DNA of 64,000 nt, from positions 191,317,394 through 191,381,393 of the forward strand of contig NC_052153.1 in the NCBI RefSeq assembly GCF_902713615.1, given 5' to 3'. Position 1 is the first letter of the stretch; each line of letters starts with the position of its first letter. This document shows, one piece after another, positions 7,386 through 63,205 of this stretch. The stretch is from Scyliorhinus canicula. Its lineage: Eukaryota. Below the pieces are notes generated by a model. It had not been told where the DNA came from, did not search any database, and was given only the letters and a program-made list of their open reading frames with translations. Both the position numbers and the translations under genes were made by a program.

Positions 7386-7579
7386 ATAAAAGAGGCAATG
7401 GGCAACTGGGACTTCGGCTGCTGCCAGATTGACAAGCTTCTTGGCCAATCAGCGCTGTGGAAGAGGTGGCCCAGTCTCCAAAGCAGCCAATCAGCTTTGG
7501 TAATGATTGGGATCAGGCAGAAGCTTTTCCTGGATTGCATACATCTCTGTTTTAAATCATTTTAAACATCGATACTCAC

Positions 7580-7975
7580 CATTCACTGTCAGATTGGTTC
7601 CTTGCCGTACTTGAAATGTGTCGATGTTGAGCTCCACACGGCAGTGATAAACTTTGCTGTCCGCCCGGCTCAGTCGCTCCATCATTATTGAGGCATCATT
7701 GTTGCTGAGATTGCCCACGAATCGGATTCGGCTCCCAGCATCCCGCTGCTTCCCACTCTCACACGGTTCACCCTGTGAAGGGTCTGTACCAGGATATGTA
7801 CATCGGAAAGTTATTTCACGATTCCCTGGGTCAGAGGTGAACCACATCACGGAGCCGGTGATGCTCCGATTAGTGGGTGGGGGGTGGGTGAAACGACACG
7901 GCAGGACAGCCGTTCCCCCCTCCCCCACACTCACACCATCCGCCACGGTCATTGTCCAACGATTCAGTGAAAGCC
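7580..7975 (-). CDS. SIGLEC15: Gene A exon 2: Siglec-15-like Ig V-set domain (396 bp, phase 1-1), essential Arg intact
   Basis: Translation WTMTV..AVLPCRFTHP..VMW..FRC..C..RIRFVGNLSNNDASIMMERLSRADSKVYHCRVE..GTNLTV matches the Siglec-15 V-set pattern as I recall it (PCTFTHP, FRC..C extra Cys pair, YFCRVE). Polypyrimidine-CAG acceptor at 7976-7977 and G|GTGAGT donor at 7579-7578. Orthology versus paralogy is not established. Confidence 0.8.
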
Positions 7976-38775: not shown

Positions 38776-38927
38776 GTCCGCCTCAATTGGCGTACCGACT
38801 TAAAACCACCTTCGTCTGCACAATTAGGGATGGCCAATCAATTTTAGCCTTGCCAGCGACTCACAACCCTGTCAATGAATTCAAAATAAATGTAAAGATT
38901 GAACAGTTATTATTGGAAAGCACCTAC

Positions 38928-38994
38928 TATAACCCAGCAGCGGGGTCGACAGCAGGACTGTGGAGAGCCCAATGTAGACAGTAGTCATTGCCAT
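38928..38994 (-). CDS. Gene A exon 1: signal-peptide (leader) exon MAMTTVYIGLSTVLLSTPLLGY
   Basis: 67-bp ATG exon with a hydrophobic core, ending A|GTAGGT (phase 1, compatible with the V exon). It is an inverted homolog of 60032-60098 with the same length and donor. Splicing to 7975 is inferred. Confidence 0.7.
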
Positions 38995-39718
38995 TCCTCC
39001 AGTGTTTTTCATCTCTCTCACTCGCTGCTCCTTCTCACTTGGCACTGAAATGCAGAAGTTACTCGAAGTGAACTTCTGGTGAAATTCTCAAGATATTAAT
39101 CACTGTTGCTCAATTTAGCAGCGAATGTGATGTCCGCTTGCGGTGAGCAGGAGCTGAGATGTTTATTTAAAACTCGGAAATTTGGCACAAACCCCAGCAT
39201 TTGTAGAGAAGGAGAGATTCTGCATCGGCTTTCAATCTCGTCCTCAGACTGTCCATCACGTTCCATAGCGATCAAATTGATTAGTGGGGAGGAAGGGTGT
39301 TGGGACGATGGTGCACAAGTAACCCACTCCTATGTATCGTGCGGCACACCAGAGGTAAAATACGCGCTGTCTGCTGATTTCCCCATTGCCGTCTGCAGCC
39401 AGTCGTACACAAGCTGCGAACATCGGAAGGGGGGTGTGGCCATCTAAAATGGCCGCTCGCATAGATCGCTGGGAAATTTGGCCAAGCCCGAGTACAGACA
39501 GGCTGCCGCCTGCAAATAAACAAAAGCTGCAGCGCAGACGTATGCAGAAACTAACACAGGAGAAAAGCCATTAAAAGGCCAACCCGGGACAATGGATTCC
39601 AGGTAGAAACTGACAATAAGCGGCAGACTCAGCGGCGCCTGCTTTCCTTATTTGGGAAGGCCTACGTGCTTCGGACACAAGAGACTATGGCCGACCGGGA
39701 CCCGTCCGGCCATCAAGG
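38995..39718 (-). promoter_or_regulatory. Putative upstream/promoter region of gene A (left half of a split bidirectional region)
   Basis: About 80 bp upstream of the ATG is homologous to the gene B upstream sequence (TTCTGCATTTCAGTG..GGAGCAGCGAGTGAGAGAG). CpG-containing stretch with GGGTGTGGC (KLF/Sp-like) and AAAATGGCCGC (YY1-like) near 39430-39456. Motif matches alone are weak evidence. Confidence 0.35.
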
Positions 39719-39943
39719 TGTGGTAGTCACCACTATATGTATATATGACATATATGAGAAGTAATACGGTAAGGCTCCGCCCAGTAGGCGGAGTATAAAT
39801 GTGTGTGCACACCGAGCTGCAACCATTTCGGCAGCAGCTGCAGGAGGGAACACATCTCTGTGTAATAAACCCTCGATTACTCTCTACTCTCGTCTCGTCG
39901 TAATTGATAGTGCATCAATTTGTTAAGCAGAGATTTTACAGCG

Positions 39944-42558: not shown

Positions 42559-43006
42559 GGATTTTCGGCGGGAGCAGGGGCCTGTCGGGAAGGTGAGTGT
42601 GTGCCTTTAAATTTGCTTGCCTTTCAGCGGGAGTGGCCTCTGGATTTTCGGCGGGAGCAGGGTGTTAACATGCACTAGATGCTGTGGTCTGAAGAGGCAA
42701 GAGTTCAGCTCCTTTTTCACCGACACACCTTTAATGGTTCAAACTCACTCTGCACAGAGCTCTACAGATCATCACAAGCTCCAGAGTCCACCTGAAGCCC
42801 CTTTACATATCAGTGTCAATCATTGAACACTTAACATAAATGAGACAATCATTGAACACTTAACATAAATGAGACAACTAATTGCAATGTCTCTTAACCC
42901 ATTACTTAACAGTCTCCCCTTCCTTGGGAAAAAAAAACAATTAGGTAAAAACAACATTTCAAGAAACTAACATTTCAAGAAACTAAAAGAAGAAGAAAAA
43001 AAACAT

Positions 43007-46000
43007 TCACAGAAACAGGCGCCCTTCATTCACGATATCTAATAGTTTCTGTGAACTAGCCCCTCTTTTCGTGAAACAGTCTGACAGTTGATAGCTACTG
43101 TCAACCCATTTAATTTTTGTTATTTCTCCTCTGTCCAACATCTGCTTTAAATTTGCGATGTCTATCCGTAACCTCTTTTCATTGACACTTTTTGTAGATT
43201 GCACATTTTCCCACAGAGATTTATTGTCAATGTGACAGTCAATAGGTATATTACCTAAATCCTCTAATCCCAAAATTTCTGTCAATATCTGACCTATATA
43301 AAAGGCCATATCCACCGCTTCCACTAAGCTTAATGTCTCAGCAGCCAAAGTGCTTTTTTAAAAATAAATTTAGAGTACCCAATTATTTTTCCAATTAAGG
43401 GGCAATTTAGCATGGCCAATCCACCTACTCTGCACATTTTTTGGGTTGTGGGGGCGAAACCCACGCAGACACGGGGAGAATGTGAAAACTCCACACGGAC
43501 AGTGACCCAGAGCCGGGATTGAACCTGGGACCTCAGCGCCGTGAGGCAGCTGTGCTAACCACTAGGCCACCGTGCTGCCCTGCCAAAGTGTTTTTGACCA
43601 CTCTCCTTATTTTCTTTGTTTCCCACACAAGAGGGCAACATTTACCATTGTTCCCCAAAAGGAAAATTATAAAACCTGCTGCGCTTGAAACTCCATCACA
43701 TAAATTTGCATAGGACACATCACTATAAACTATGAGTTTCAAATGCCTAGGATCACCTAAAACAGGGAACTTCAAAACACACTCCTGCATTTTTAGTTTG
43801 GCCAACACTTTATTTGCTCTTATTATATCTTCCACTTTGGGATCATTCATCTTTGTACTCAACTCTAAAACATCAAAACTCACGTCCGGTCTAGTCTGTC
43901 TTCCTAACCAGTTCAGTTGCCCAATTAAACTTCTCAGTTGCTCTTTTTCTATCTTCGAAACCATTGCGTCTTTTTGTGAAACCCGGCGACGACTAATTGC
44001 TATTGGACTGATGCTTTCCAAGTAAGATTGCTGATGTAAAGTTGCCCCTAACTGAGTCTGTCCTATTTCCAAACCAATATATTTAAATGCACCGGAAGCC
44101 TGACTTCCAACCCTGAATTCTTTCCTCAAACCAGAGATTATAATAGCTTCAAAATCACTAGTCCCACCCCACAAAAAATCATCGACATGCATCATGAAGA
44201 TGCCAGCAAGATTTCCTTTATAGTGCCAGTAAAACATTGCAGGATCTGCTTTCAACTGGCAACAGCCTAACTTTAACAAGACTGACCTCACCGAAAAGTA
44301 CCACACTCTCGATGCATCATTTAATCCATATACACATTTGTTCAACTTCCAGAGTACCCCTTCTGTGTTAGCTGCTTCTTTAGGAGGACGGAGAAAAATG
44401 TCTCTCTGGAGCTGATGCCCCTGAAAAAAGGCAGCTTTTATATCTATAGATTTACATTCCCATGCCTTTGTGGCTAATAGAGCCAAGAAGATCTTTAAAA
44501 TAACCTTTCCTGCTGTAGGTGAATCTACCCTTAAGTCCTGATCGTCTAAGTTTTCTTCAAATCCCCTTGCCACAAGCCTGGCCTTTGCCTTATAAGTTCC
44601 ATCTGGAAGAACCTTTTCTGTACAAATCCATCTGTGGGATAGAGCTCTTTGTCCCCTATCCGTACTTCCGTGTATACCCCAAATTCACTCCAACTATGTA
44701 ATTCTTGCTGTTTAGCATCTTTGATAACTTTTTCATCTAATTTATTTGAAGCCACCAAAATCTCACGTGCATGTGGGCTTCTACTTCTATTAGTATTCGT
44801 AGTCTTACTCCTGTTCCGAGATCTTGATAAACTACGTCCCCTTTCCTGCCTGGTATCTCGTTCTGTACTGCTACTGCTTGATCTTTCTCTTCTATAGCGG
44901 GATGTCCTTTCAATAGTTCTTGACCTTTTCCTGCGAACCTGTTCACTATCCGATGTACTACCTGAATTATGTCTTACATAAGGCCGTACATTATGTCTTA
45001 AAGCTCTGCGAATTCTTTCAGAGACTTCTGCTTCCTAAAAAGCTTTTCTACTGCTATGTAACACGTTTAAATGTTCAGCAAAACCTGAGCTAATTGTAGT
45101 CCCTTCCCAAGCTGGAGGCTGGTCATCAAAAATGGAGGGAATTTTAGGATTTCTACCAAACACTAATTGATAAGGACTATAGCCCCCAACCATCTGCAAT
45201 GAATTATTTGCATGTACCGCCCATGCTAAAGCTGAATTTAGCGTGCAGTTTGGTCGATCTCCCAAAATTTTCCGAAGCATGTCATCGATAACAGCATGAT
45301 TTATTTTGCAGACACCATCACTAAACAGGCTTTCGGCAACCGTGTTCATAACTCTGATATTCACGTTTTCACACATATCCCTAAACTCATCATCAGCAAA
45401 TTCTCCCCCATTGTCCGTAAAGAATTTTGCTGGTGGACCCATTCCTGTCCCGATCCATTTTTCCACAATTTTGTCCAAAATTACTCTCTTTTCTTTACTT
45501 CGTACAATCGGTGATTGACTAAATCTGGTAGCTAAATCTACAAAATTCAAAATAAATATATTATTTGCTTTATCCCAGATCTTAAGGTCCATGGCCACAA
45601 TGTTATTAAAATCCCTGGCCCAAGGTAGGGTTACTATTGGTCGTGCTGGTGTCCTTCTGTACTTCCTGCAAACTTCACAGCGATCACTAACCTGTTCTAT
45701 CAGCTTAGAATAGTCATCATCCCTTACCCCTGCATCCTTTAATAAATTTTTCAGCCTCCGAGGAGACGGATGTGCAAATTGCCAATGCAGTTTTACTACA
45801 ATAAGCTTTTTACCAGCTAAAGTCGCATTATCAACTGTCATTAATACATCCTTAACCACTCTACTTGAAACATTATTTATCAATAATGGAATACAATAAT
45901 GTCCCGACTGTGTAAATTGTAAGTCCACCGTCTTTCCAAAAACTGTTGCCTTATCCTGTTCCATATCCAGCTTCATGTGTGCTTTCTTCATCGACGGTCT

Positions 46001-47199
46001 GCTCAGAAGCAAAGGTATCTCACTTGATACAACATCTGTGCTAATAAAATGATTCACTCCAGCAATATTGCAAGGGATCACCACTCTTTTCAGCGACTTC
46101 AGAGTATTAGCATCCCCAAACCTGAACTTTTAAATTCCTTAACCTTGTTACGATTTTCAGCATCCAATGAGTCCAGATAACATTTTAACCAGTCAATCCC
46201 ACACACAGTAAATGTGCAGCCACTGTCCAATACAACACAGTTAAAGGATTCTGCAACCAACACCCTCATTACCGACGTAAAACAGCTTGTTAATAGGACA
46301 ATGCCTTCTTTCTGGTCACTATCTTTTTCCTCTTCTGACTCTTCCGTGTCATGTGTCGCTTCAAATACTCGATCATAATGAGTTGGACAGCTGAAAGCAT
46401 AATGGTATTGAGAGTCACATCGAAAACATCGATTTATCATGCCCCGTGCATTTCTGGGGTTCATCTTCCTATTGTAGGTTCTAACTGGGTTTCTGTCTTC
46501 ATAATTTCCTTGTCTCGGTCTTCTTTTATAGTCTTGAGGCCTGTTCGTAGCCATACGATTTTGCCATCCTGTTAGTAGTGTATCTTCCATATTCTGCCTT
46601 ATAGCAGGCTCACCTATTTGGGTCATCAGAGCCATTGGAATCGAATGTTTCCCCAAAAATCTTTTTAAAGCTGTTGTCATCTGTTCGAATAAGGTATCGT
46701 TATCCGTAAACTGAACTCCTGTCAAAACCAGGAGCCTATCCATGTTGCTCACTCTAGCACAGTCAAGTAATTTAATGGCCATCACAGATTGTGGCAATTC
46801 CAGCCTGTGTTTCTGCAGCTTTTTATATAGTCTGCCAAATTCCATTATATACTCTTCCATAGATACAGCCTCCATTTTCAGGAACTTATCAAAATCCGAC
46901 CATGCTTCATACGCACTTAACAAGTCATCTTTCTTATAAATCTTGTCCATATAAAGTAATAAAGTCGCCAGACCTTCTTCTGAGTCTAACTCTTCCAACT
47001 CCACCTCAGAAAGCACTTTGTTTCGGATTTTACTGCCATATGGTAAAGAAAGAGCCAATGCCATACCTTGTTTTCTCTTTCCTAAAGCAGTCACCTTAGT
47101 CCACATAACTACTGCACTTCTCCATTGGTCGTATGATTCCCTTTCAGAAAATAGGGGAGGATAATCATAACCAGGCATCTTTGTCCTGGGTTCAGCCAT
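43007..47199 (-). pseudogene. Copia gag-pol (gag with CCHC, PR LDSG, IN, RT, RNase H), disrupted
   Basis: ORFs 46099-47199, 45035-46084, 43533-44573 and 43007-43348; the integrase catalytic Glu position reads Lys (VCKINH); stop and frameshifts. Confidence 0.88.
43353..43581 (-). mobile_element. Short HE1-related SINE inserted in the Copia RNase H
   Basis: TSD core GCCAAAGTG (43344-43352 / 43582-43590); same family as 6099-6322. Confidence 0.85.
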
Positions 47200-47295
47200 G
47201 TTTCCCTTTTTGTTTCACTCCTAGGTTTGATCTGGAAAAATTGTATCTTTCAAGCCTTCACATTTACACATCAACCATTCTCTGCTACCATTGTT

Positions 47296-50200
47296 TTTTT
47301 TTAAATAATTTTTATTGAAAAATTTTGATTTTATACAACATTGACGCACCTTAGTAAAATACCGAAAATAACAATAATATTAACAGTCATATACATTCGC
47401 CCCAAGCCCATGAACAACCCAGCATTTTAACAACAACGCAAATGAACACACTATAAAGTTACAGAATAAACACTACAATAATGCACCCCCCCCACCGGGT
47501 TGCTGCTGCTATTGACCAAGATACCTATCTCTGAGCCAGGAAGTCCAGAAAAGGCTGCCATCGTTTATAGAACCCTTGTATTGATCCTCTCAGGGCAAAT
47601 TTGACCTTTTCCAATTTTTAATAAATCCCGCCATGTCACTGATCCAGGTCTCCACGCTTGGGGGCCTTGCATCCTTCCATTGTAACAGAATCCTTTGACG
47701 GGCTACTAGGGACGCAAAGACCAGGACACCGGCCTCTTTCGCCTCCTGCACTCCCGGCTCTACCGCAACTCCAAAAATCGCGAGTCCCCACCCTGGTTTG
47801 ACCCTGGATCCAACCACCCACGACACCGTCCCCGCCACCCCCTTCCAGAATTCTTCCAGTGCTGGGCATGCCCAGAATATATGGGCGTGGTTCGCAGGAC
47901 TTCCCGAACATCTGGTGCACCTGTCCTCACCCCCAAAGAACCTACTCATCCTAGTCCCGGACATGTGGGCCCGGTGCAGCACCTTAAATTGGATGAGACT
48001 AAGCCTCGCACATGAGGAGGAAGAGTTGACTCTCTCCAAGGCCTCCGCCCAAGTCCCGTCCTCTATCTGCTCCCCGAGTTCCTCCTCCCATTTAGCCTTC
48101 AGCTCCTCCACTGACGACTCCTCCACCTCCTGCATTACTTTATAGATGTCAGACACCTTCCCCTCTCCTACCCACACCCCCGAAAGCACTCTGTCCATCG
48201 TCCCCTGCGAGGGCAGCAAAGGGAATCCCCCTACCTGTCGCCGAGCAAACGCCTTTACCTGCAGGTATCTGAACATGTTCCCTTGGGGAAGGCCAAATTT
48301 ATCTTCCAGTTCCCCCAGGCCCGCAAACCTCCCGCCAATAAACAGGTCCCTCAATTTGCTGATGCCCGCCCTTTGCCACCCCCTGAATCCCCCATCCGTG
48401 TTCCCCGGGATGAACCGATGGTTGCCACCCAGTGGAGCCTCCATCGAGCCCCCTGTTTCCCCCCGATGCTGTCTCCACTGTCCCCAGATTCTTAGGGTCG
48501 CCGCCACCACCGGGCTCGTGGTAAACCTCTTAGGGGAGAGCGGCAACGGTGCCGTTACCATGGCACCCAGGCTCGTACCTCTACATGACGCCATCTCCAT
48601 TCTTTTCCACGCCGCCCCTCCCCCCTCCATCACCCATTTACGCACCATTGACACATTGGCTGCCCAATAGTACCCCAGAAGGTTGGGCAGCGCCAGCCCG
48701 CCTCTATCCCTTCCTCGCTCCAGGAACACCCTCCTCACTCTCGGAGTCCCATGTGCCCACACAAAGCTCAGAACACTGCCGGTCACCCTCCTAAAGAAGG
48801 CCCTGGGGATAAATATGGGCAGGCATTGAAAAAGGAACAAGAACCTCGGAAGCACCGTCATTTTGACGGACTGTACCCTCCCAGCCAATGACAATGGCAG
48901 CATGTCCCACCTCCTGAACTCCTCCTCCATCTGATCTACCAGTCTGGTGAAGTTATGCTTGTGGAGAGTCCCCCAGTCCCTGGCCACTTGCACCCCCAGG
49001 TACCTAAAGCTCTCCCCTGCCCGCCTAAGCGGGAGCCTACCAATTCCTTCCTCCTGATCTCCAGGGTGCACCACAAACACCTCGCTCTTGCCTAAGTTTA
49101 ATTTATAACCTGAAAAGGTCCCAAACTCAGCCAGCAACTCCATCACTCCCGGCATCCCTCCCACCGGGTCCGCCACATACAGTAACAGGTCGTCGGCATA
49201 CAACGACACCCTATGTTCCTCTCCACCTCGCACCAAACCTCTCCACTTCTCTGAATCTCTCAACGCCATCACCAGCGGCTCGATTGCCAATGCAAACAAC
49301 AAGGGGGACAGGGGGCAACCCTGCCTGGTCCCTCGGTAAAGCCGGAAGTACTCCGACCTCCTCCTATTTGTGGCCACGCACGCCATCGGGGCCTCATATA
49401 GCAGCCTTACCCATCTAATGAACCCTTCACCAAATCCAAACCTCCCCAACACCTCCCACAGGTACCCCCACTCCACTCTATCGAAGGCCTTCTCCGCATC
49501 CAGCGCCACCACTATCTCTGCCTCCCCCTCAATCGCCGGCATCATGATGACATTCAATAATCTCCGCACATTCGTGTTCAGCTGCCTTCCCTTCACAAAA
49601 TCTGTCTGGTCCTCGTGCACAACCCTTGGCACACAGTCCTCTATCCTGGTGGCCAGGATTTTTGCCAGCACCTTAGCATCCACGTTGAGGAGAGATATGG
49701 GCCTGTATGAACCACACTGCTGGGGGTCCTTGTCCTTCTTTAAAATTAACGAGATCAGCGCCCGCGACATCGTCGGGGGCAAAGTCCCCCCTTCCCGCGC
49801 TTCGTTGAGTGTCCGCACCAGCAAGGGGCCCACTAGGTCCACAAACTTTTTATAAAATTCCACCGGGAACCCATCCGGACCCGGTGCCTTCCCTGACTGC
49901 ATCTGCCTGATCCCCTTAACTAGCTCCTCCAGCTCAATCGGCGCACCCAGCCCCTCCACCTTCTCCTCCTGCACCTTCGGGAAAGAAAGCCCGTCGAGGA
50001 ACCTCTCCATTCCCCTTCTCTCCCCCGTTGGCTCCGACCGGTACAGTTCCCCGTAAAAGTCCTTGAAGACCTCATTCACCTCTACCCCCTTCCGCACCAC
50101 ATTCCCACTCTTGTCTCTCACTCCAGCAATCTCCTTAGCCACATCCCGCTTACGGAGCTGATGAGCCAGCATCCTACTCGCCTTTTCACCATGTTCGTAC

Positions 50201-53004
50201 ACTGCCCCTTGTGCCTTTCTCCACTGTGCCTCCGCCTTTCTAGTGGTCAGCAAATCAAATTTAGCCTGCAGGCTGCGCCTCTCCCCCAACAGTCCCTCCT
50301 CTGGTGCCTCTGCATACCTCCTGTCCACCTCCAGCATCTTTCCCACCAGTCTATCCCTCTCACTCCTCTCGCTCCTCTCCCTGTGTGCCCGGATGGATTT
50401 CAGCTCCCCATGAATTACTGCCTTCAGGGCTTCCCAGACCATCCCCACCTGAACCTCCCCCGTATCATTCACCTCAAGGTACCCCTCAATACTTGCCCGG
50501 ACCCTCCTACACACCTCCTCCTCCGCCAACAACCCCACATCCAACCGCCACAACGGACGTTGGTCCCGCACCTCCCCCATCTCCAACTCAATCCAATGCG
50601 GAGCGTGGGCGGAGATTGCAATGGCCGAATACTCGGCTTCCTCCACTCTCGGAATCAGTCCCCTACTCACCACGAAGAAGTCTATCCGAGAGTAGACCCT
50701 ATGTACGTGGGAGAAGAAAGAGTACTCGCGTGCCCTCGGCCTCACAAACCTCCATGGATCCACTCCACCCATCTGATCCATAAACCCTCTTAGTACCTTG
50801 GCCGCCGCTGGCCTCCTACCCGTCCTAGAGCTGGACCGATCCAGTGAAGGATCCAACACCATATTGAAGTTCCCCCCCCATGATCAGACCTCCCGCCTCC
50901 AGATCCGGGACCCGTCCCAACATACGCCTCATAAAGCCCGCATCGTCCCAATTTGGGGCATACACACTAGCCAGTACCACCTTCTCTCCTTGTAGCCTGC
51001 CCCTAACCATAACATACCTACCCCCCTTATCCGCCACCACCTCCGATGCCTCAAACAACACATTTTTCCCCACCAGAATCGCCACTCCCCGGTTCTTCAC
51101 ATCCAACCCAGAGTGGAAAACCTGCCCCACCCATCCCTTCCTCAGGCGGACCTGGTCCGCCACCCTCAGGTGGGTCTCCTGAAGCATTGCCACACCTACC
51201 TTTAGCCCCTTCAGGTGAGCCAGTACCCTCGACCGCTTCACCGGCCCATTCAACCCTCTCACATTCCAGGTGACCAACCGGATCAGAGGGCGTCCCGCCC
51301 CCCTCCCCCATCGGCTAGCCATAGCCCGTCGACTGCCCGCCCCAGGCCAGCACCCCCTGCCCGACCCCGTCCCCATAGCGACAACCCCTCACCTCTGTCC
51401 CCCCAGCCCCCACCAGCTCCTTCTTGACCCTACCAGCAGCAACCCGGTATTCCCCTTTCCCCCCCTCCCTTCCCCCCAGGCTAGGAACCCTCCCAGCCGC
51501 GAACCGTCCTCCATTGTACTTCCGTGGGTCAGCTAACTTCTGCTGACCCCGGAAACTCCCGCCAATAACCCGACCCCTCCCAAAGTGGGATCATCCCCCA
51601 ACCTATCCCTCCTCCAGGCACCGCTCCAGCGCGGGGAAGAACCAGTTAAGGCCCCGCCTCCCCCGTCACCGTCTCCACCCCCCAGCCCCGCAGCGCGGGA
51701 AACCAGAGGAAAGCCCGCGCTTTCGCCCTGCCCCACCACACCTTTCTGACGCAGCTCCCAAATATCAGCCCCACTCCATACCCCCACTCCGGCATAGAAT
51801 ACAACATACCCCCCCGACTCTCCCCGCAAGATACACAGCCCAAACAATGCCCCACAGCACAAGAACAAAAACATAGCAGAACAACCCCTCCGTAAATAAC
51901 CCTATCAAAATTGCAAATGTACTAAAACAAGAAGAAAAAAACAGAAGAAAAAGAGAACACAGCAACAGCAGAATCTAGCACTAATATCTTACAGTCGACC
52001 TCGCAACCCCCAACCCCTAGTTCAAGTCCAGTTTCTCCGTCCGCACGAAAGCCCACGCCTCCTCCGGGGAATCGAAATAATGGTGCCGGTCCGAATAAGT
52101 TACCCACAGGCGTGCGAGCTGCAACATTCCGAACTTTATCTTTTTTCTATAAAGCACCTCTTTCGTCCGATTAAATCCGGACCGCCGCTTAGCCACCTCC
52201 GCACTCCAGTCCTGGTAGATCCGCACTAACCCATTCTCCCACTTGCTGCTCTTCACCTTCTTGGCTCAGCGCAGCACACACTCCCGATCACTGAACCGGT
52301 GGAACCTCACCAGCACCGCACGCGGGGGTTCATCTTCCTTGGGCCAGCACCCTGTGCACTCCCTCCAGCTCCAAGGGCAGATGGAAAGACCCGGCCCCCA
52401 CTAGCGAGTTCAGCATTGTAGCCACGTAGGCTGTCAGGTCCGATCCCTCCAGCCCCTCCGCAAGGCCCAAGATCCGCAGGTTTTTCCGCCTCATGCGGTG
52501 ATCAAGCTCCTCGAAGCGTTCCTGCCACTTCTTGTGGAGTGCCTCGTGCCCCTCCACCTTACTCACGAGGACCACGGCCTCCTCCTCTCGTTCCGTGGCC
52601 TGCGTCTGCAACTCCTTGATGGCAGCACCCTGGGTGGACTGAATCTCTGACAGCCTTCTGTTCGTTTCCTGCAGAGAGCTCAGTACTTCATCCTTGAATT
52701 CTTTAAAGCAGCGCAGGAGATCAGTTTGTTGCTCCTGGGCCCAGAGCCTCCATTCCTCTGGAGCTCTGTCGGTGGCCATCTTGGATCCCTTCCCCCGTTT
52801 TCTCTGAGGAGCTGCTGCTGTTTTTTCCCCCTTTCCACTCCGAGTTCGAGGCATGGACTGCGGGGAAAGTCGTTCAGCACACCTTCCCCCACCGGGAGAC
52901 GTCGAAACATTTCCGTTTTGGGCTCTCAAAAGAGCCGAAAAGTCTCTTTAAAACGGGAGCTCCCAAATGTGTGGCTTCCTACTCCATCACAGCCATCGGA
53001 AGTC
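47296..53004 (-). mobile_element. Full-length L1-clade LINE, copy 2 (5.7 kb), inserted at the Copia LTR/PBS junction
   Basis: 16-bp TSD CTCTGCTACCATTGTT (47280-47295 / 53005-53020). ORF1 52854-52017 has a frameshift and a stop. ORF2 from 51322 has a 1090-aa open stretch and only two frameshifts, both in homopolymer runs. Confidence 0.96.
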
Positions 53005-53270
53005 CTCTGCTACCATTGTTAACATGTACTAGATGCTGTGGTATGAAGAGGCAAGAGTTCAGCTCCTTTTTCAACAACACACCTTTAATGGTTCAAACGC
53101 ACTCTGCACAGAACTCTACAGATCATCACAAGCTCCAGAGTCCACCTGAAGCCCCTTTACATATCAGTGTCAATCATTGAACACTTAACATACATGAGAC
53201 AATCATTGAACACTTAACATAAATGAGACAACTAATTGCAATGTCTCTTAACCCATTACTTAACACAGGG

Positions 53271-53625
53271 GCCTGTCGGGAAGGTGAGTGTGTGTCTTTA
53301 AATTTGCTTGCCTTTCAGCAGGAGCAGCCTCCGGATCTTCGATGGGAGCAGGGGCCTGTCGGGAAGGTGAGTGTGGGCCTTTCAATTTGCTTGCCTTTCA
53401 GCGGGAGTGGCCTCCGGATTTTCGGCGGGAGCAGGGACCTGTCGGGAAGGCGAGTGTGGGCCTTTCAATTTGCTTGCCTTTCAGCGGGAGCAGCCTCCGG
53501 ATTTTCGGCGGGAGCAGCGGACTGTCGGGAAGGTGAGTGTGGGCCTTTCAATTTGCTTGCCTTTCAGCGGGAGCAGCCTCCGGGTTTTCGGTGGGAGCAG
53601 GGGCCTGTCGGGAAGGTGAGTACCT
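53271..53625 (+). repeat. 83-bp tandem monomers of the CR1 5' UTR (plus ~1.25 units at 42559-42662)
   Basis: CTGTCGGGAAGG recurs at 53273, 53356, 53439, 53522, 53605. Confidence 0.92.
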
Positions 53626-53765
53626 GTATATAAGTTGGGCGGTTGCTAAAACCGAGACACTACACTTGTAGTGTCCCCCCACCCTTCCACCTCCTCTAAC
53701 CTAAGGGTTTGAGGGAATATCAGGTGAGCTCTTCCTTTCTTTTTCTTGTTTTTTATCTAGAGGGG

Positions 53766-54690
53766 ATGGCAGGGAAGGCAGTACAATGCCCCTCCTACAG
53801 AATGTTTGAGGTGAGGGACGCCGTCGGTGTCCCTGCTGATTTCATCTGTGGGAAGTGCACCCAACTCTAGCTCCTCAAAAACCGTGTTAGGGAACTGGAG
53901 CTGGAGCTGGATGAACTTCAGATCATTCGGGAGGCAGAGGGGGTCATAGATAGGAGCTTCAGGGAGGTAGCTACGCCAAAGAATAAAGATAGATGGGTGA
54001 CGGTGAGAGGGGCTGGGAGGAAGCAGTCAGTATAGGGATCCCCTGTGGTCATTCCCCTTAGTAACAGGTATACCGCTTTGGATACTGTTGGGGGGGGGGA
54101 CTTTCCAGGGGTCAGCCATGGGGTACAGGTCTCTGGCAGAGTCTGTCCCTGTTGCTAAGAAGGGAAGAGGGGAGAGGAGAAGAACATTAGTCATTGGAGA
54201 CTCCATAGTTAGGGGGATAGATAGGAGATTCTGTGGGAACGAGAGAGACTCGCGGTTGGTGTGTTGCCTCCCAGGTGCCAGGGTCCGCGATGTCTCGGAT
54301 CGTGTTTTCGGGATCCTTAAGGGGGAGGGGGAGCAGCCCCAAGTCGTGGTCCACATAGGTACCAATGACATAGGTAGGAAAAGGGATAGGGATGTAAGGC
54401 AGGAATTCAGGGAGCTAGGGTGGAAACATAGATCCAGGACAAACAGAGTTATTATCTCTGGGTTGTTACCCGTGCCACGTGCTAGTGAATCGAGGAATAG
54501 GGAGAGAGAGCAGTTCAACACATGGCTACAGGGATGGTGCAGGAGGGAGGGTTTCAGATTCCTGGACAATTGGGGCTCATTTTGGGGTAGGTGGGACCTC
54601 TACAAACAGGAAGGTCTACACCTGGACCAGAGGGGTACAAATATCCTGGGGGGGAGGTTTGCTAATGCTCTTCGGGAGGGTTTAAACTAG
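53766..54690 (+). pseudogene. CR1 ORF1: zinc finger, leucine zipper, SGNH/GDSL esterase
   Basis: VQCPSY..ICGKC, RVRELELELDEL, LVIGDSIVRG, VHIGTND, EGLHL; in-frame TAG and a frameshift. Confidence 0.85.
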
Positions 54691-57658
54691 TTCAGCAGGG
54701 GGTTGGGAACCTGAATTGTAGCTCCAGTACACAAGAAGTTGAGAGTAGTGAGGTCATGAGTAAGGTTTCAAAGTTGCAGGAGTGTACCGGCAGGAAGGAA
54801 GGTGGTCTAAAGTGCGTCTACTTCAATGCCAGGAGCATCCGGAATAAGGTGGGTGAACTCACCAGGTTAGTACCTGGGACTTCGATGTTGTGGCCATTTC
54901 GGAGACATGATAGAGCAGGGACAGGAATGGTTGTTGCAGGTTCCGGGGTTTAGATATTTCAGTAATCTCAGGGAAGGTGGTAAGAGAGGGGGAGGGGTGG
55001 CATTGTTAGTCAAGGACAGTATTACGGTGGCTGAGAGGACATTTGATGAGGACTCGAATACTGAGGTAGTATGGGCTGAGTTAAGAAACAGGAAAGGAGA
55101 GGTCACCCTGTTAAGGGTTTTCTATAGGCCTCCGAAAAGTTCCAGAGATGTAGAGGAAAGGATTGCAAAGATGATTCTGGATAGGAGCAAAAGTAACAGG
55201 GTAGTTGTTATGGGGGACTTTAACTTTCCAAATATTGACTGGAAACACTATAGTTCGAGTACTTTAGATGAGTCCATTTTTGTCCAATGTGTGCAGGAGG
55301 GTTTCCTGACGCAATATGTAGATAGGCCAACGAGGGGCGAGACCGTATTGGATTTGGTACTGGGTAATGAACCAGGACAGGTGTCAGATTTGGAGGTAGG
55401 TGAGCACTTTGGTGATAGTGACCACAATTCGATTACGTTTACTTTAGTGATGGAAAAGGATAGGTATATACCGTAGGGCAAGAGTTATAGCTGGGGGAAA
55501 GGCAATTATGATGTGATGAGGCAAGATTTAGGATGCATCGGCTGGAGAGGAAAACTGCAGGGGATGGGCACAATGAAAATGCGGAGCATGTTCAAGGAAC
55601 AGCTACTGCGTGTCCTTGATAAGTATGTACCTGTTAGGCAGGGAGGAAGTGGTCGAGCGAGGGAACCATGGGTTACTAAAGCAGTTGAAACACTTGTAAA
55701 GAGGAAGAAGGAGGCTTATGTAAAGATGAGACGTGATGGTTCAGTTAGGGCGCTTGAGAGTTACAAGTTAGCTAGGAAGGCTCTAAAGAGAGAGCTACGA
55801 AGAGCCAGGAGAGGACATGAGAAGTCTTTGGCAGGTAGGATCAAGGATAACCCTAAAGCTTTCTATAGATATGTCAGGAATAAAAGAATGACTAGGGTAA
55901 CAGTAGGGCCAGTCAAGGACAGTAGTGGGAAGTTGTGCGTGGAGTCCGAGGAGATAGGAGAGGTGCTAAATGAGTATTTTTCGTCTGTATTCACACAGGA
56001 AAAAGACAATGTTGTCGAGGAGAATACTGAGATACAGGCTACTAGACTAGAAGGGCTTGAGGTTCATAAGGAGGAGGTGTTAGCGATTCTGGAAAGTGTG
56101 AAAATAGGTAAGTCCCCTGGGCCGGATGGGATTTATCCTAGGATTCTCTGGGAAGCTAGGGCAGAGATTACTGAGCCTTTGGCTTTGATCTTTGATCTTT
56201 AAGTCATCTTTGTCTACAGGAATAGTGCCAGAAGACTGGAGGATAGCAAATGTTGTCCCCTTGTACAAGAAGGGGAGTAGAGATAACCCCGGTAACTATA
56301 GACCAGTGAGCCTTACTTCTAGTGTGGGAAAAGTCTTGGAAAGGTTTATAAGAGATAGGATGTATAATCATCTGGAAAGGAATAATTTGATTAGAGATAG
56401 TCAACATGGTTCTGTAAATGGTAGGTCGTGCCTCACAAACCTCATTGAGTTCTTCGAGAAGGTGACCAAACAGGTGGATGAGGGTAAAGCAGTTGATGTG
56501 GTGTATATGGATTTCAGTAAAGCGTTTGATAAGGTTCCCCACGGTAGGCTATTGCAGAAAATACAGAGGCATGGGATTCAGGGTGATTTAGCAGTTTGGA
56601 TCAGAAATTGGCTAGCTGATAGAAGACAGGAAGACAGGTGGTTGATGGGAAATGTTCAGACTGGTGTCCAGTTACTAGTGATGTACCACAAGGATCTGTT
56701 TTGGGGCCGCTGCTGTTTGTCATTTTTATAAATGACCTGGAGGAGGGCGTAGAAGGATGGGTGAGTACATTTGCAGATGACACTGAAGTCGGTGGAGTTG
56801 TGGACACTGCAGAAGGATGTTACAAGTTACAGAGGGACATAGATAAGCTGCAGAGCTGGGCTGACAGGTGGCAAATGGAGTTTAATGCAGAAAAGTATGA
56901 GGTGATTCATTTTGAAAGGAATAACAGGAAGACAGAGTACTGGGCTAATGGTAAGATTCTTGGTAGTATTGACGAGCAGAGAGGTCTCGGTGTCCATGTC
57001 CATAGATCCCTGAAAGTTGCCACCCAGGTTGAGAGGGTTGTTAAGAAGGCGTACGGTGTGTTAGCTTTTATTGGTAGAGGAATTGAGTTTTAGAGCCATG
57101 AGGTCATGTTGCAGTTATACAAAACTCTGGTGCGGCCGCATTTGGAGTATTGCGTGCAGTTCTGGTCGCCTCATTATAGGAAGGATGTGGAAGCATTGGA
57201 AAGAGTACAGAGGAGATTTACAAGGATGTTGCCTGGTATGGAGGGAAGATTTTACGAGGAAAGGCTGAAGGACTTGAGGCTATTTTCGTTAGAGAAAAGA
57301 AGGTTAAGAGGTGACTTAATTGAGGCATACAAGATGATCAGAGGATTAGATAGGGTGGACATTGAGAACCTTTTTCCTCGGATGGTGATGTCCAGCATGA
57401 GGGGACATAGCTTTAAATTGAGGGGAGATAGATAGAGGACAGATGTCAGAGGTAGGTTCTTTACTCAGAGAGTAGTAGGGGCGTGGAATGCCCTACCTGC
57501 AACAGTAGTGGACTCGCCAACACTAAATGCATTCAAATGGTCATTGGATAGGCATATGGACGATAAGGGAATAGTGTAGAGGGGCTTTAGAGTGGTTTTA
57601 CAGGTCGGCGCAACATCGAGGGCCGAAGGGCCTGTACTGCGCTGTACTGTTCTATGTT

Positions 57659-58740
57659 CTACTCCATTGCGGAAGTCAGGGCGGTCACCAAAGTCTACCA
57701 GGTCTGCGCTGAGTGCAAACCGCATTTCTACCGGCCAGACCGAGCACACCTGGTGCAGGCCTCCCATCCCTTTGAACGCCTCAGCATGGACTTCAAAGGG
57801 CCCCTCCCCTCCTCCGACCGAAACGCATACTTCCTGAACGTGGTCGATGAATACTCCAGATTCCCCTTTGCCGTCCCATGCCCTGATATGACGTCTGCCA
57901 CAGTCATCAAACCCCTCAATAGCATCTTCACTCTATTTGGTCTCCCCGCTTACGTCCACAGCGATCGGGGATGCTCCTTTATGAGTGATAAGCTGCGTCA
58001 ATTCCTGCTCAGCAAGGGCATTGCCTCGAGGAGGATGACCAGCTACAACTCCCAGGGAAACGGGCAGGTGGAGAGGGAGAACGCGAAGGTCTGGAACGCC
58101 GTCCAGCTGGCCCTACGGTCTAAAAATCTCCCGGTCTCCCGCTGGCAGGAAGTCCTCCCCGACGCCCTCCACTCCATCCAATCGCTACTTGGCACTGCGA
58201 CTAATGCAACCCCCCCCCCCATGAAGGGCTCCTTGCCTTCCCTAGGAAGTCCACCTCCGGGGTTTCGCTCCCAACGTGGCTGGCAGCTCCAGGACCCGTT
58301 CTCCTCCGCAAGCACATGTGGCTCCACAAGGCGGACCCGTTAGTCGAGAGGGTACAGCTACTCCATGCAAACCCGCAGTGGTGTACCCTGACGGCTGCCA
58401 AGACACAGTCTCCCTCAGGGACCTGGCACCAGCTGGTCCCCCCCCCCCCACCTCCAACTGCCCCGGCGCCACCCATCCTCCCCCCAGCGCACCTCACCAC
58501 AGCCCCCGCTCCAGGATGATCCGCCCTCTCATGGGTTCCACCCGGGGATGAAGATGAGGACTACACGCTCCCGGAGTCACCGGCGACCAAGCCTGCATCA
58601 TCACCGGGACTACGGCGCTCACAACGGGGGATCAAGGTACCCGACCGGCTAAATTTGTGAACTTTTCCCCAAACTGTACACTTTAAAAAGGCTCACATAC
58701 ATGCAAATAGTTTTTCCACCACCCCTGCTGGACTCTTTTT
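57659..58740 (+). pseudogene. Gypsy integrase, 3' part
   Basis: Resumes as YSIAEV..CAEC; SMDFKGP, HSDRGCSF, GNGQVERENA (DDE core); frameshifted downstream. Confidence 0.9.
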
Positions 58741-58994
58741 AACAGGGGGTGAATGTGGTAATCACCACTGTTTGTCTATATGACGCATATGAGAAGTAAT
58801 ATGGTAAGGCCCCTGTACTACAGGCACGGGGATAGATCCCTGCCTGCTGGCTCCGTCCAGTAGGCAGAGTATAAATGTGTGTGCTCACCGAGCTGCAGCC
58901 ATTTCAGCAGCAGCTGCAGCAGGCCACACATCCCTGTTGTAATAAAGCCTCGATTACACTCCACTCTCGTCTCGTCGTAATTGATAGTGCATCA

Positions 58995-60031
58995 CAAGGG
59001 GTCCGACCCCAATTGGTCAGGATAGATCAGGGTGATCGAGACCCTATCCATCCATTGGACCTTCACCTGGGACCACCCAAAAGGGTACGAAAGCTAGAAG
59101 GACGAAAGGTGCTGCGTAGCCCACCACTCGCTCTCTCGACAGCCAAGAACAACGGTGAATCCATCACCAACCAAGGGGAGAACCATCCACGCCATCCACA
59201 GAGGGACCAGAGCCGAGGACACAGGCATCCAGCTACAAGAACTCCAGCACTGCCACACTACCAGATCCTAGATAAGGCCATATCTGCTCTGTACTTGCCA
59301 GTCACCTGGAAGTTAAGTTAGGGTCATTTATAAGTGTATAAGTTCTGTCTTTGGTAACTGCACTTCCCTTTTTACGCTGTGGCAATGTAGTTCCCGTGCG
59401 GCTCTGCACAGCGAAATGATTCCGTCTGTGACATTTCGTACAGGTCTCGCTGAAGGCATTGTTTCACTGGGTGGGCGTGGCCACAGCTTTAACATGTTGC
59501 GTCGTGTGCAAAATGCCACCGTCGGGAGCACGCCGTTTTTTCAAGTGCGCCACGGAATCAGCCTGAGATCTGTTACGAAACAGTCAATTGTTTCACCTGC
59601 CTTTCTGGACACTTTTTGGGAATGGCAGATTGGCCATGCCAAGTATCGGGCCCGGGAATGCCTGCCCTCAAGAGATGGGGGTGATGGGAAGTTCAAAGAG
59701 CACCTACGTTGGGTGCAATGGGGGAGGGGGAGGTCCGTGAATACTCTCCCTGCATGGGGAGATGACCTCGTCAGTGCGGGAAAGGATGGAAGTGTGGCCC
59801 CGGTGACGCTATAGTCCCGTTAAACCGTGCCCGTTAACCCTGTTTGCCTCTCGACAATTTTTCTGCCACTTGTTTTGAATTAAACAGGTTTCCTGTTATT
59901 CAGTAAATTCAGGAAGCTGTCTCATCCATTTAGGGCGATTTCACAAGTGTGAACAAATATCTTGAGTAATTTCTGCATTTCAGTGTCAATAGACAAGGAG
60001 CAGCGAGTGAGAGAGGTGAAAGACTGAAGGA
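58995..60031 (+). promoter_or_regulatory. Putative upstream/promoter region of gene B (right half)
   Basis: Proximal ~80 bp shared with gene A; GGGTGGGCGTGGCC near 59469; TTCCTG/CAGGAAG ETS-like cores near 59890-59916. Confidence 0.35.
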
Positions 60032-60098
60032 ATGGCGGTGGCTTCTGTCTACGTTCGGCTCTCCACACTCCTGCTGTCTGTCCCGGTGCTGGGTTACA
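60032..60098 (+). CDS. Gene B exon 1: signal-peptide (leader) exon MAVASVYVRLSTLLLSVPVLGY
   Basis: ATG at 60032, hydrophobic leader, A|GTAGGT phase-1 donor at 60099; lies 885 bp upstream of the V exon acceptor. Confidence 0.75.
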
Positions 60099-60394
60099 GT
60101 AGGTGCTGCTTCTTCCTAATAATTCCTCAAAGTTGTTTTGAATTGTGCTTTTTATTACTTCCCTGTCGGATTCTAGAGTGGGTGATGTCCAAAGCAGAGC
60201 TGGTGGAACAGGGTGGGGTAGAATGATTGGGAAGATTTGAGCAAGGTGCAGAGAACATGATCCAGGACTAGGCCATGCAGCACCCCCCCCCCCCCCCCCC
60301 CCCCCCCTCCCCCAACTCGAGCCTGAGCCCAGATTCAATGATTGGGGTCTGAATTCCATCCACTTGGATCTGGCTCACTAACGCCCTTCAAGTT

Positions 60395-60810
60395 TCATAG
60401 AATCCCTACAGTACAGAAAGTCTGCACCCACCCTTTGAAAGACCACCCTATCTAGCCCCACTCCTCCGCCCTATCCCCATAACCCCACCCCACCTAACCT
60501 GCACACCTTTGGACCATGGGAGGAAACCAGAGCACTCGGAGGAAACCCACACTGACATGGGGAGAACGTGCAAACTCCACACAGACAGTGACCCAAGGCC
60601 GGAATTGAACCCGGGACCCTGATGCTGTGAGGCTGCAGTGCCAACCACTGTGCCGTCCAAGGGAAGGAAATCTGCCCTCCGTACCTGGTCTGGCCTACAT
60701 GTGACTCCAGACACACAGCAACTTGGTTGACTCTTAATTGACCTCGGGCATGGGCAGCAAATGCTGACCCAGCCAACGAGACCCACAGCCCATGAACGAA
60801 TATTTTTTAA
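60395..60810. mobile_element. HE1-type SINE (minus, ~60395-60655) adjoining a second-family SINE body (+, ~60656-60810) in gene B intron 1
   Basis: Similarity to the SINE copies at 36450 and 7095. Confidence 0.75.
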
Positions 60811-60983
60811 AAACGTGCAAGCCCGCACTGTCACTGCATCAGGATTGGACAATCGCAGTCTGACGAGATGATGTATCTATTTTCACTCTGTAACAGACTC
60901 AGTATATTGAGCCTCGCAGTTTGTTTTTGACACACTGCTGTCTGTCCCTGTGCTGTTTTAATATTCTCTCTCTCTCCGCACAG

Positions 60984-61379
60984 GGTATTCTCTGAATAAT
61001 TGGACAATGACCGTGGCGGATGGCGTGAGTGTGGGGGAAGGGGGAACGGCTGTCCTGCCGTGTCGTTTCACCCACCCCCCACCCCCTAATCAGAGCGTCA
61101 CCGGCTCCGTGATGTGGTACACCTCTGACTCAGTGAATCATGAAATAACTTTCCGATGTACATATCCTGGTGCAGACCCTTCACAGGGTGAACCGTGTGA
61201 GAGTGGGAAGCAGCGGGATGCTAGGAGCCGATTCCGATTCGTGGGCGATCTCCGCAACAATGATGCCTCAATAATGATGGAGCGACTGAGCCGGGCGGAC
61301 AGTGATGTTTATCACTGCTGTGTGGAGCTCAATATCGGCAAATTTCACACACTGAGAGGAACCATTCTGAAAGTGAGAG
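60984..61379 (+). CDS. SIGLEC15: Gene B exon 2: Siglec-15-like Ig V-set domain (396 bp, phase 1-1), essential Arg replaced by Cys
   Basis: Open exon of about 81% aa identity to the gene A V exon. (CT)n-CGCACAG acceptor ends at 60983; G|GTGAGT donor at 61380. Motif reads YHCCVE (TGT at 61319-61321) versus YHCRVE in gene A. Confidence 0.8.
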
Positions 61380-61659
61380 GTGAGTATCGATGTTCAGGGT
61401 GGCAGCTGCCCCCTCCACCTCCAGTTCAATGGGTAGAGACGCCCAAACGGCCGTGGAGGTGATTTATTTTGCTCCAAACGGTTTATAAACGGGACACATT
61501 TCCATTGACCTGATTGGATGGTCTTTCAGTGCACTGAATGGCCATTCAGGTAGAACGCTCTGATTGGCTACTCAGGGATTCCAGGGAGGCATTTCAGCAG
61601 GTGAGCGGCAACAGGGATAGTCAGAGTGTGAAAGGGAGTGAGAGAGTCGGAGTGAGCAT

Positions 61660-62355
61660 TCGTGAAAAAGAGTCAGAGAGAGTGAGGGGATAGAGGGAGA
61701 GAGTCAGAGTGGAGAAAGGAGAGAACGATAGAGAGTCAGAATGGGGAAAGGAGAGATAGAGAGTCAGAGTGGGGAAAGGAGAGAAAGATAGAGAGTCAGA
61801 GTGGGGAAAGGAGAGAAAGATAGAGAGTCAGAGTGGGGAAAGGAGCGAAAGATAGAGAGTCAGAGTGGGGAAAGGAGAGAAAGATAGAGAGTCAGAGTGG
61901 GGAAAGGAGAGAAAGATAGAGAGTCAGAGTGGGGAAAGGAGAGAAAGATAGAGAGTCAGAGTGGGGAAAGGAGAGAAAGATAGAGAGTCAGTGTGGGGAA
62001 AGGAGAGAAAGATAGAGAGTCAGAGTGGGGAAAGGAGAGAAAGATAGAGAGTCAGAGTGGGGAAAGGAGAGAAAGATAGAGAGTCAGAGTAGGGAAAGGA
62101 GAGAAAGATAGAGAGTCAGAGTGGAGAAAGGAGAGTCAGAGTGGGGAAAGGAGAGAAAGATAGAGAGTCAGAGTGGGGAAAGGAGAGAAAGATAGAGAGT
62201 CAGAGTGGGGAAAGGAGAGAAAGATAGAGAGTCAGAGTGGGGAAAGGAGAGAAAGATAGAGAGTCAGAGTGGGGAAAGGAGAGAAAGATAGAGAGTCAGA
62301 GTGGGGAAAGGAGAGAAAGATAGAGAGTCAGAGTGGGGAAAGGAGAGATAGAGAT
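61660..62355. repeat. Purine-rich minisatellite, ~20 x 32 bp
   Basis: Unit GTGGGGAAAGGAGAGAAAGATAGAGAGTCAGA recurs at 61769, 61801, 61833 ... 62333, with one 20-bp shortened unit at 62121. Confidence 0.95.
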
Positions 62356-62359
62356 TCAG

Positions 62360-63205
62360 GGTGGGTATTAAGATCCAGGAAGCAGAACGGGAGGGTGAAC
62401 ATCTGTTTATTTACAGTCACAAAAAGTCTGCCGATGGCAGCAAATATATACACAGACTAAAGTTCTGTTAGGACAGCCAACTTGCCGGTCCCTGGCTGGG
62501 TCGGCCTTTATACTGTGTTCATGTGAGCCCCAGCTGACCTGGCCTCCGCCCACTAGCGGGAAGCTCAGATTCCACGAGTCCCACAGGGAGATCAATCAGA
62601 GTATTCCCGTGGGCCACGCCTCAAATCTGAAAGCACCCCCTCTGCATAATCTGGAGGAGGCCTTCTGTGCCGCTTCCCACATGGTTGCGCTTCCGCCAGT
62701 GCCGGGCCTGGGTCAGGTGACATTTTTCGAGACCTCTGGAGGGATACAGCCGGGAGCCGGGGGGGGGGGGGGGGGGGGGAGAGGGGGGGGGGGGGGGTCT
62801 GCTCTGGACACGACATCGTCTGTGAGTGCAGGCGCTTTAGTGTCCATCTCCAAGCCTAAATTGTCATCGTCTTGACGGCCTGGGTTTTGAACCACAGCGG
62901 GCTGCATTCCTTGGAGTAGTCCATGAGGTGGTGGAGGTACCAACGTCTCTGGCCGGGCACCCTCTGAGGTGCGATCTCGAGATGGTCAATGTGCTGACGC
63001 AAGGCCTTCCCTTGGGTCTCGACCTGATAAGATACGGGCCCAGTTTTCTCCAACACACTCCCCGGGATCCAAAGGGCGCCGTCTCTAAAATTCCGGACAA
63101 AAATAATTGACAACGTCTCCTGACTTCCTGTGGTCACGATACTTCCTTTGCATATCTAGTTGCAGCTCGGTTTTCTGCCCAAACTTGGGTAAGTCAGACT
63201 TAAGC
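62360..63205 (-). mobile_element. Gypsy 3' fragment (integrase C-terminus and probable LTR)
   Basis: FVRNFRDGALWIPG..TGPVSYQV..RQHIDHL; TATAAA and AATAAA on minus within 62400-62515. Confidence 0.65.

Follow-up and report, generated by a model that had tools for sequence, protein, structure and literature searches.

Two Siglec-15-like genes in the window

In a 64,000-nucleotide stretch of the Scyliorhinus canicula genome (contig NC_052153.1, positions 191,317,394 to 191,381,393 of the forward strand; here called the window), two copies of a V-set exon differ more often in protein-changing than in silent codons. An earlier note on this DNA had read the excess as diversifying selection on the ligand-binding face of the encoded domain rather than as neutral decay. 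The question raised by the locus is what history produced these differences, and whether selection on ligand contact was part of it.

The V-set exon of gene B (LOC119970765, a Siglec-15-like activating receptor) lies at 60984-61379 on the plus strand (Pfam V-set PF07686, E 5e-12). It is a phase 1 exon of two bases, 131 codons and one base, bounded by an AG acceptor at 60982-60983 and a GT donor at 61380-61381. Only one other copy lies in the window, at 7580-7975 on the minus strand; it needed no gaps in the alignment and is the paralogous V-set exon of gene A (LOC119970764; 91.8% identity by blastn, Pfam V-set E 3e-13). The translation of the A exon matched residues 30-160 of P0147 exactly (LOC119970764, Scyliorhinus canicula, 353 aa), and that of the B exon was identical to P0180 and P0178 (LOC119970765, 347 and 317 aa). 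A and B are both intact genes in the public annotation. Their annotated products consist of a signal peptide, the V-set domain, a second Ig domain (Ig2), a lysine-bearing membrane anchor and a short tail; Ig2 and an anchor with the motif G-V-K-L-L-P are present in P0147 and P0180. The Ig2 and membrane-anchor exons of both genes were searched for in the window by tblastn and none was found there; they lie beyond its two ends.

The leader (signal peptide) coding exons were located by tblastn, that of gene A at 38928-39012 on the minus strand (with P0147, 100% over residues 1-28) and that of gene B at 60032-60098 on the plus strand (with P0180). The two genes are arranged head to head, with the leader exons back to back and about 21 kb apart, and the first intron spans about 31 kb in A versus 0.9 kb in B. 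Two blocks of homology could be aligned between the genes. The first is a 146-base block that spans each leader and the bases upstream of it (38919-39064 versus 59964-60107); it was 85% identical, with 10 mismatches in 71 non-coding bases and a pS of 0.148 in the coding part. The second is an island of 465 bases that comprises about 50 intron bases, the V exon and 15 further intron bases (60934-61394 on the plus strand on the B side, pairing with 7565-8029 on the minus strand). Upstream of the exon 3 of the 49 aligned intron bases were mismatched, and the 15 intron bases downstream were identical. A search for collinear A/B intron homology beyond the island found only dispersed repeats.

The interval between the two leader exons, 39719-58994, is filled with repeats. 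Element copies occur in inverted orientation at 10404-14714 and 51732-47484 (77% identical) and at 9210-10211 and 53007-52013; one copy of the 4-5 kb element lies in the first intron of A and the other in the intergenic repeats. These inverted copies probably belong to one retroelement family rather than to the gene duplication. A dispersed repeat in intron 1 of B covers 60548-60597. Tandem arrays were present in intron 2 of B directly after the V exon (period 32 bases, 61631-62448), in intron 2 of A (period 50 bases, 6507-7205), and at 53266-53680 and 42492-42740 (period 83 bases).

Relationship to human Siglec-15

The best solved relative of the shark V domain by sequence was human Siglec-15 (7ZOZ_A, E 4.9e-14 in phmmer). 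The same chain was the top Foldseek match of the AlphaFold model (pLDDT 81), followed by sialoadhesin and other Siglecs, so that human Siglec-15 (PDB 7ZOZ) was the best match in both sequence and fold. In the shark products as in human Siglec-15, the V domain is accompanied by a second Ig domain and by a membrane anchor that contains a lysine. The differences are that identity to the shark domain is only about 32%, that the shark F-G loop is three residues shorter, that the shark family has several copies, some of them with an ITIM, and that gene B has a cysteine at the position of the essential arginine.

In Siglec-15-like receptors the essential F-strand arginine (R143 in the human protein) forms a salt bridge to the carboxylate of sialic acid, and the lysine in the anchor would serve pairing with a DAP12-type adaptor. 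The B-F disulfide, an extra C'-C'' disulfide and the pocket tryptophan W44 have been described for human Siglec-15 (PMC10264397). Human C64-C142 (B-F), C95-C104 (C'-C'') and W44 correspond to shark Cys26/Cys111, Cys58/Cys71 and Trp6 in both genes. In a family alignment of 66 sequences Cys26, Cys58 and Cys111 were invariant, and Cys71 and Trp6 were at least 90% conserved. Substitution of the human arginine (R143A) abolishes binding (PMC10264397). In gene A the aligned residue is Arg112 in a C-R-V-E motif, encoded by CGT at 7638-7640, versus TGT (Cys) in gene B at 61319-61321 on the plus strand. The sialic-acid contacts of the human protein, W44, Y87, R143, V150, R153, Y154 and E155 (PMC10264397), map by alignment to shark codons 6, 50, 112, a deleted position (V150), 119, 120 and 121.

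Distribution of the differences between the V exons

The counts given in the earlier note were reproduced. Between the two exons 36 of the 396 bases differ, and among the 131 codons 25 change the amino acid and 5 are purely silent. By the Nei-Gojobori method pN was 0.102 (Nd 30.5, N 299.2) and pS was 0.059 (Sd 5.5, S 93.8), which agrees with the claimed excess of pN. The alignment also bore out the claimed positions, with ten changes in the last 20 codons (112-131), four in the eight codons of the C-C' region (45-52), three in the five of the B-C loop (34-38), and identical framework blocks at codons 6-33, 64-79 and 91-106. The strand labels matched the assignments of the AlphaFold model. By the alignment and this predicted model, which was read without coordinates, codons 34, 36 and 38 lie in the B-C loop, codons 45-52 make up the C strand, the C-C' hairpin and the start of C', codon 112 is on the F strand, and codons 118-131 are on G and G'.

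The largest cluster is formed by codons 118-131 (61337-61378 on the plus strand in B, 7581-7622 on the minus strand in A), which cover the F-G loop and the G and G' strands and in which 9 of the 14 residues differ between the genes. Nine is also the maximum number of changed codons in any 14-codon window of the exon, and this clustering was beyond chance (permutation p 0.005). The changed codons preferred columns that are variable in the family (Mann-Whitney p 1e-4 over the whole exon and 0.028 within the core, codons 6-117). Seven of the 36 exon differences are CpG transitions, of which six, including R36Q, R52H and R112C, alter an amino acid. All six fall among the 15 protein-changing differences of the core, and this mutational bias raises the protein-changing count of the first 117 codons.

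One explanation for these patterns is that the exons diverged in place after a recent duplication, under diversifying selection on the glycan-binding face, and that all 25 changes are its product. The clustering in the B-C loop, the C-C' hairpin and the F and G strands is in line with this, and so is the enrichment of contact-homologous positions, of which 4 of 6 differ between A and B compared to 21 of 125 positions elsewhere (p 0.012). The proposed clustering on the ligand face holds, however, for only about two thirds of the changes. Codons 63, 80, 83, 88 and 90 are placed by the model strands in the C'-D-E region, distant from the pocket, and these codons, like the six protein-changing CpG transitions, count against this explanation.

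Tests of dN/dS along the exon

Over the whole exon pN and pS did not differ significantly (Fisher p 0.41 two-sided and 0.20 one-sided; binomial p 0.21). A pairwise codon model gave an omega of 2.3, a point in favour of diversification in place, but it could not be distinguished from 1 (LRT 3.33, p 0.068, likelihood interval about 0.95-7), and the expectation of a dN/dS above 1 was not borne out at this scale. In the core pN was 0.058 and pS was 0.051, with an omega of about 1.2 (1.15 by Nei-Gojobori; ML 1.38, LRT against omega = 1 p 0.56; p 0.5-0.56 over the two methods). The core, then, has an omega close to 1.

A different result was obtained for codons 118-131, where pN was 0.369, pS was 0.046 and the ML estimate of omega was not bounded (LRT 8.74, p 0.003; about 0.03-0.06 after a rough correction for overlapping windows, as the window was picked post hoc, and with low power as it holds only about 11 silent sites). 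Of its 12 differences 8 are at second codon positions, none of the six fourfold sites has changed, and the nine altered residues are accompanied by one silent change at most. When a homogeneous exon with one rate and omega = 1 was simulated, only 0.1% of the simulations yielded a window as extreme, and the homogeneous neutral model for the exon was rejected.

A segment such as this could also have reached its divergence by greater age. A depth-only model of the G strand was rejected against a model with both depth and omega (p 0.024), and the addition of a separate depth to a separate omega gave no improvement (p 0.35). The selection-only partition model fitted slightly better than the depth-only model, a point that also speaks for diversification in place. 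The density of protein-changing differences in the G strand exceeded the neutral density of the leader, the oldest local neutral estimate (p 0.005). At the silent sites of the G strand and the 15 adjoining intron bases 0-1 differences were seen versus 3.7 expected at leader depth (P 0.03-0.12). The positions of the G strand are among the most variable across the whole family, and part of the signal could stem from weak constraint on exposed residues instead of positive selection. Positive selection on the G strand is the more likely reading, and we hold it with moderate confidence. The claim of diversifying selection as opposed to neutral decay thus stood in part: uniform neutral decay was rejected by the clustering and by codons 118-131, while omega could not be told from 1 over the whole exon or in the core. 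The sign of probable selection is confined to codons 118-131, and outside them the exon looks neutral.

Mosaic history of the V exon

A protein search recovered a third S. canicula paralogue, gene C (LOC119970771, P0186), an ITIM-bearing, inhibitory receptor. The genes found in S. torazame were P0182 ('Siglec-15', activating), P0185 ('Siglec-12', inhibitory) and P0184. Comparisons with these genes were made by protein partitions and protein trees, and the DNA-level comparison was of A versus B. Different parts of the genes grouped in different ways. At codons 16-110 the informative sites either sorted by species (7 sites) or joined A and B, and at codon 1 and codons 118-131 they sorted by receptor type. 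Sorting by type was also seen in the leader and the anchor/tail, where A went with B, and in the 3' region of Ig2, where A went with C.

The percentages of identical residues changed in the same manner at the border of the G strand. Torazame Siglec-15 and Siglec-12 were 95% identical in the V core versus 29% in the G strand, and A and B were 88% identical in the core versus 36% in the G strand. In the G strand identity was 71% between B and torazame Siglec-15 and 79% between A and C (11 of 14 residues); codons 118-131 of A are of the G-strand type of the inhibitory paralogue and of torazame Siglec-12. B and torazame Siglec-15 have H121, I127, K129 and R131 in common. H121 and I127 were found only in these two among the Scyliorhinus sequences compared and were absent from 60 more distant members of the family. 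V122 is common to A and C, and N131 to A, C and torazame Siglec-12.

The trees supported these groupings. For the V core, the tree placed all three S. torazame sequences in a single clade (support 98/98), and AU tests on the core rejected the pairing of B with torazame Siglec-15 (p 0.011) and that of C with torazame Siglec-12 (p 0.021). With the partition of leader, G strand, 3' Ig2 and anchor/tail, A, B and torazame Siglec-15 were joined (99/98), C was joined with torazame Siglec-12 (100/99), and species clades were rejected (p 0.0013 and 2e-5). A clade of A, B and C in the V core was neither recovered nor rejected (AU p 0.13). At neutral positions the divergence between A and B was 13/91 in the leader block compared to 7/128 in the V core and the 49 intron bases (Fisher p 0.032). 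The grouping of the core by species and not by gene is a signature of gene conversion, and the V core appears to have been homogenized between paralogues, with strong support for S. torazame and only moderate support for S. canicula.

The states of the G strand are common to an orthologue or paralogue in S. torazame. The 3' cluster is for this reason older than both species, predating the split of S. canicula and S. torazame rather than being fresh divergence after the duplication. The same sharing argues against divergence in place, because six G-strand states of B are found in torazame Siglec-15, those of A are found in C and torazame Siglec-12, and states of this kind did not arise after A and B had duplicated; the G-strand type of B is already present in S. 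torazame. Divergence in place as the source of all 25 changes is for us an improbable account. An exon with more than one history cannot be validly summed up by one pairwise dN/dS.

A second explanation takes up the mosaic and leaves out positive selection. In this view the 3' cluster, together with codons 1-5, would be older sequence outside the conversion tracts, or would have been copied from C into A, and the rest would have drifted under relaxed constraint. The disagreement between the partition phylogenies, the lower neutral divergence of the V core compared to the leader block and the core omega of about 1 all agree with this, and there is a precedent in primates, where constraint is relaxed in the converted exons of SIGLEC11/16 (PMC5701461). 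An old patch should, however, carry silent changes, and codons 118-131 show none at the fourfold sites and at most one overall, next to 15 identical intron bases. The rejection of the depth-only model and the excess of protein-changing density over the oldest local neutral estimate also count against a mosaic without positive selection, which we consider unlikely but give slightly more weight than divergence in place.

Gene A is itself a mosaic, with a B-like leader and anchor/tail (anchor/tail 97% identical) and a C-like G strand (79%) and 3' Ig2 (94%). From these sequence relationships gene A may be the activating partner that corresponds to C. Some relatives from Chiloscyllium, Hemiscyllium, Stegostoma and other sharks (P0002, P0142-P0146, P0001) have 2-7 copies of the V domain in one predicted protein, which reflects either internal duplication or the fusion of tandem genes in the gene models.

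Loss of the conserved arginine in gene B

The change at codon 112 of gene B, R112C, is a CpG transition at a position where 88% of 60 family members have an arginine. With C, S. torazame and distant sharks as the reference, the core changes that occurred on B alone are at codons 63, 80, 88, 90 and 112 and probably 45, those on A alone are at codon 83 and probably 34, and both genes changed at codon 107 and probably 52. At codons 36, 38, 49 and 50 one of the two states is common with C. Several of the B changes hit positions that are conserved in the relatives, namely R112C, N88D, G80R, S90R and T63A, and 95% of the relatives have an asparagine at codon 88. Loss or change of function fits the hits of B at conserved sites (R112C, N88D, G80R) better than fine-tuning does.

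The N-glycosylation sites differ as well. The family site N88-L-S90 is absent in B (61245-61253) through N88D and S90R, and R5N in B creates a site, N5-W-T7 (60996-61004), beside the pocket tryptophan. Gene A has gained an N-L-T site, N127-L-T129, on the G' strand (7587-7595).

A third explanation is that gene B is in decay, and that after the loss of its arginine it has drifted as a functionless or nearly functionless copy, which inflated the count of protein-changing differences. The five hits at conserved positions, the core omega of about 1 and a terminal branch in the core tree about three times longer for B (0.13 versus 0.038 for A) would be expected in that case. But the reading frame and splice sites of B are undamaged, and RefSeq models two isoforms of it. 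Sequence words specific to the B exon were found at 0.5-0.78 in small runs, whose assignment to RNA is a guess, with little of the flanking intron in the same runs, an indirect hint of transcription; A shares only about 15% of the 31-base words of B. With S. torazame used for polarization, about 8 of the core changes fell on B versus 4 on A, an asymmetry that was not significant (relative-rate p 0.25), and A has a hit of its own at a conserved site, F83I. The earlier note had named two patterns that would count against selection, namely that all changes lie on the B branch and that they scatter as in a pseudogene. Neither was seen: changes were found on both branches, and they avoid conserved framework columns, both in the core (p 0.028) and overall (p 1e-4). 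The largest cluster, in addition, is type-specific and has been kept in the torazame orthologue. Decay of gene B is very unlikely to explain the differences, and B looks like a live gene rather than a pseudogene.

Gene B is Siglec-15-like by descent, but its function as a lectin is doubtful. That function has probably been lost or changed, and canonical binding of sialic acid is probably gone.

A probably converted core and older types of G strand

Our preferred explanation, which we consider probable though far from certain, joins mosaic V exons, a converted core, selected older G-strand types and the loss of the arginine in B. Gene conversion between activating and inhibitory members of the same species would have exchanged the V core (codons 6-117 and about 50 upstream intron bases). 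The exchange would account for a divergence of about 5.5% at neutral sites in the core compared to about 14% in the leader block. Protein-changing differences in the core have accumulated at about the silent rate. Codons 118-131, and probably codons 1-5, would have escaped homogenization and would represent two types that are older than the split of the species. B would hold the G-strand type of Siglec-15, and A would hold the type of its inhibitory neighbour LOC119970771. By homology with human Siglec-15, codons 118-131 are predicted to line the sialic-acid pocket, and with 9 of 14 residues changed and at most one silent change, selection on ligand contact most likely drove and maintained the difference. 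In B, R112C, the loss of N88-L-S90 and the gain of N5-W-T7 are added to this.

Some observations fit this explanation less well. The 14-codon window was chosen post hoc and its few silent sites leave a corrected p of about 0.03-0.06; these silent sites and the 15 intron bases look young for an older segment; the core clade of A, B and C was left at an AU p of 0.13; and the G-strand positions vary throughout the family.

A broader version of the preferred explanation is possible, and we propose it tentatively. Evolution of the domain would proceed in two tiers, in which conversion keeps the framework matched and a 'specificity cassette' (residues 1-5 together with the F-G loop and G strand) is selected as discrete types and reshuffled between activating and inhibitory backbones. 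Gene A, with an activating anchor and the G strand of an inhibitory gene, would be one such product, and paired Siglecs would have originated here independently of those in primates.

Comparison with Siglecs in primates

The locus reads as a shark instance of processes already known in Siglec evolution, namely copying between genes, rapid change of the V domain and loss of the arginine. In primates, gene conversion that joins activating with inhibitory members is known for the V exon of SIGLEC11/16, with a nearly neutral omega in the converted exons (PMC5701461), and for the V-domain exon of SIGLEC5/14 (PMC6288428). Like these pairs, the shark family has activating members with a charged residue in the membrane and inhibitory members with an ITIM, V exons that group by species, tails that group by type, and an omega close to neutral in the apparently converted part of the exon. 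In contrast to the primate pairs, the shark family is Siglec-15-like and belongs to cartilaginous fish, and homogenization stops before the G strand, which stays type-specific. Both genes in the window are activating, and their V exons are 91% identical and not nearly identical. Activating and inhibitory partners with near-identical ectodomains were not found in the comparison of A, B and C, in which A and the inhibitory C were 85% identical in the V domain.

The arginine loss has a close parallel in human Siglec-XII, where a universal R122C removes the essential arginine (PMC6288428), the same kind of change as R112C in shark gene B. Both this protein and Siglec-5 of the great apes lost the F-strand arginine in an otherwise intact, annotated gene (PMC6288428). 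The shark event differs in that it is independent and took place in another Siglec lineage. For the CD33-related Siglecs it has been reviewed that the first Ig domain evolves rapidly, with protein-changing differences concentrated around the sialic-acid pocket more than in neighbouring domains (PMC6288428), and in the shark genes such differences likewise concentrate in the V-set domain around the pocket. Here the significant signal is, in contrast, confined to 14 codons and comes from one pair of paralogues and protein comparisons.

Significance for the Siglec-15 family

Siglec-15, a target in cancer immunotherapy, is seen as a conserved activating receptor that occurs singly. To our knowledge the Siglec-15 lineage of mammals is single-copy and activating only, and has no inhibitory partner. 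The literature search returned no paper that deals with Siglecs together with Scyliorhinus. In sharks Siglec-15 is part of a family of several copies, in which both activating and inhibitory receptors occur. When paralogues such as these exchange sequence, a pairwise dN/dS between them mixes several histories and should not be taken at face value. The two types of G strand on a shared V framework offer a natural experiment on the ligand specificity of Siglec-15. The three processes known from the CD33-related Siglecs of primates, which are copying between paralogues, rapid change around the pocket and loss of the arginine, appear to be active in the shark family. If this is confirmed, the dynamics of paired receptors would be ancient in the evolution of Siglecs and would have recurred in it.
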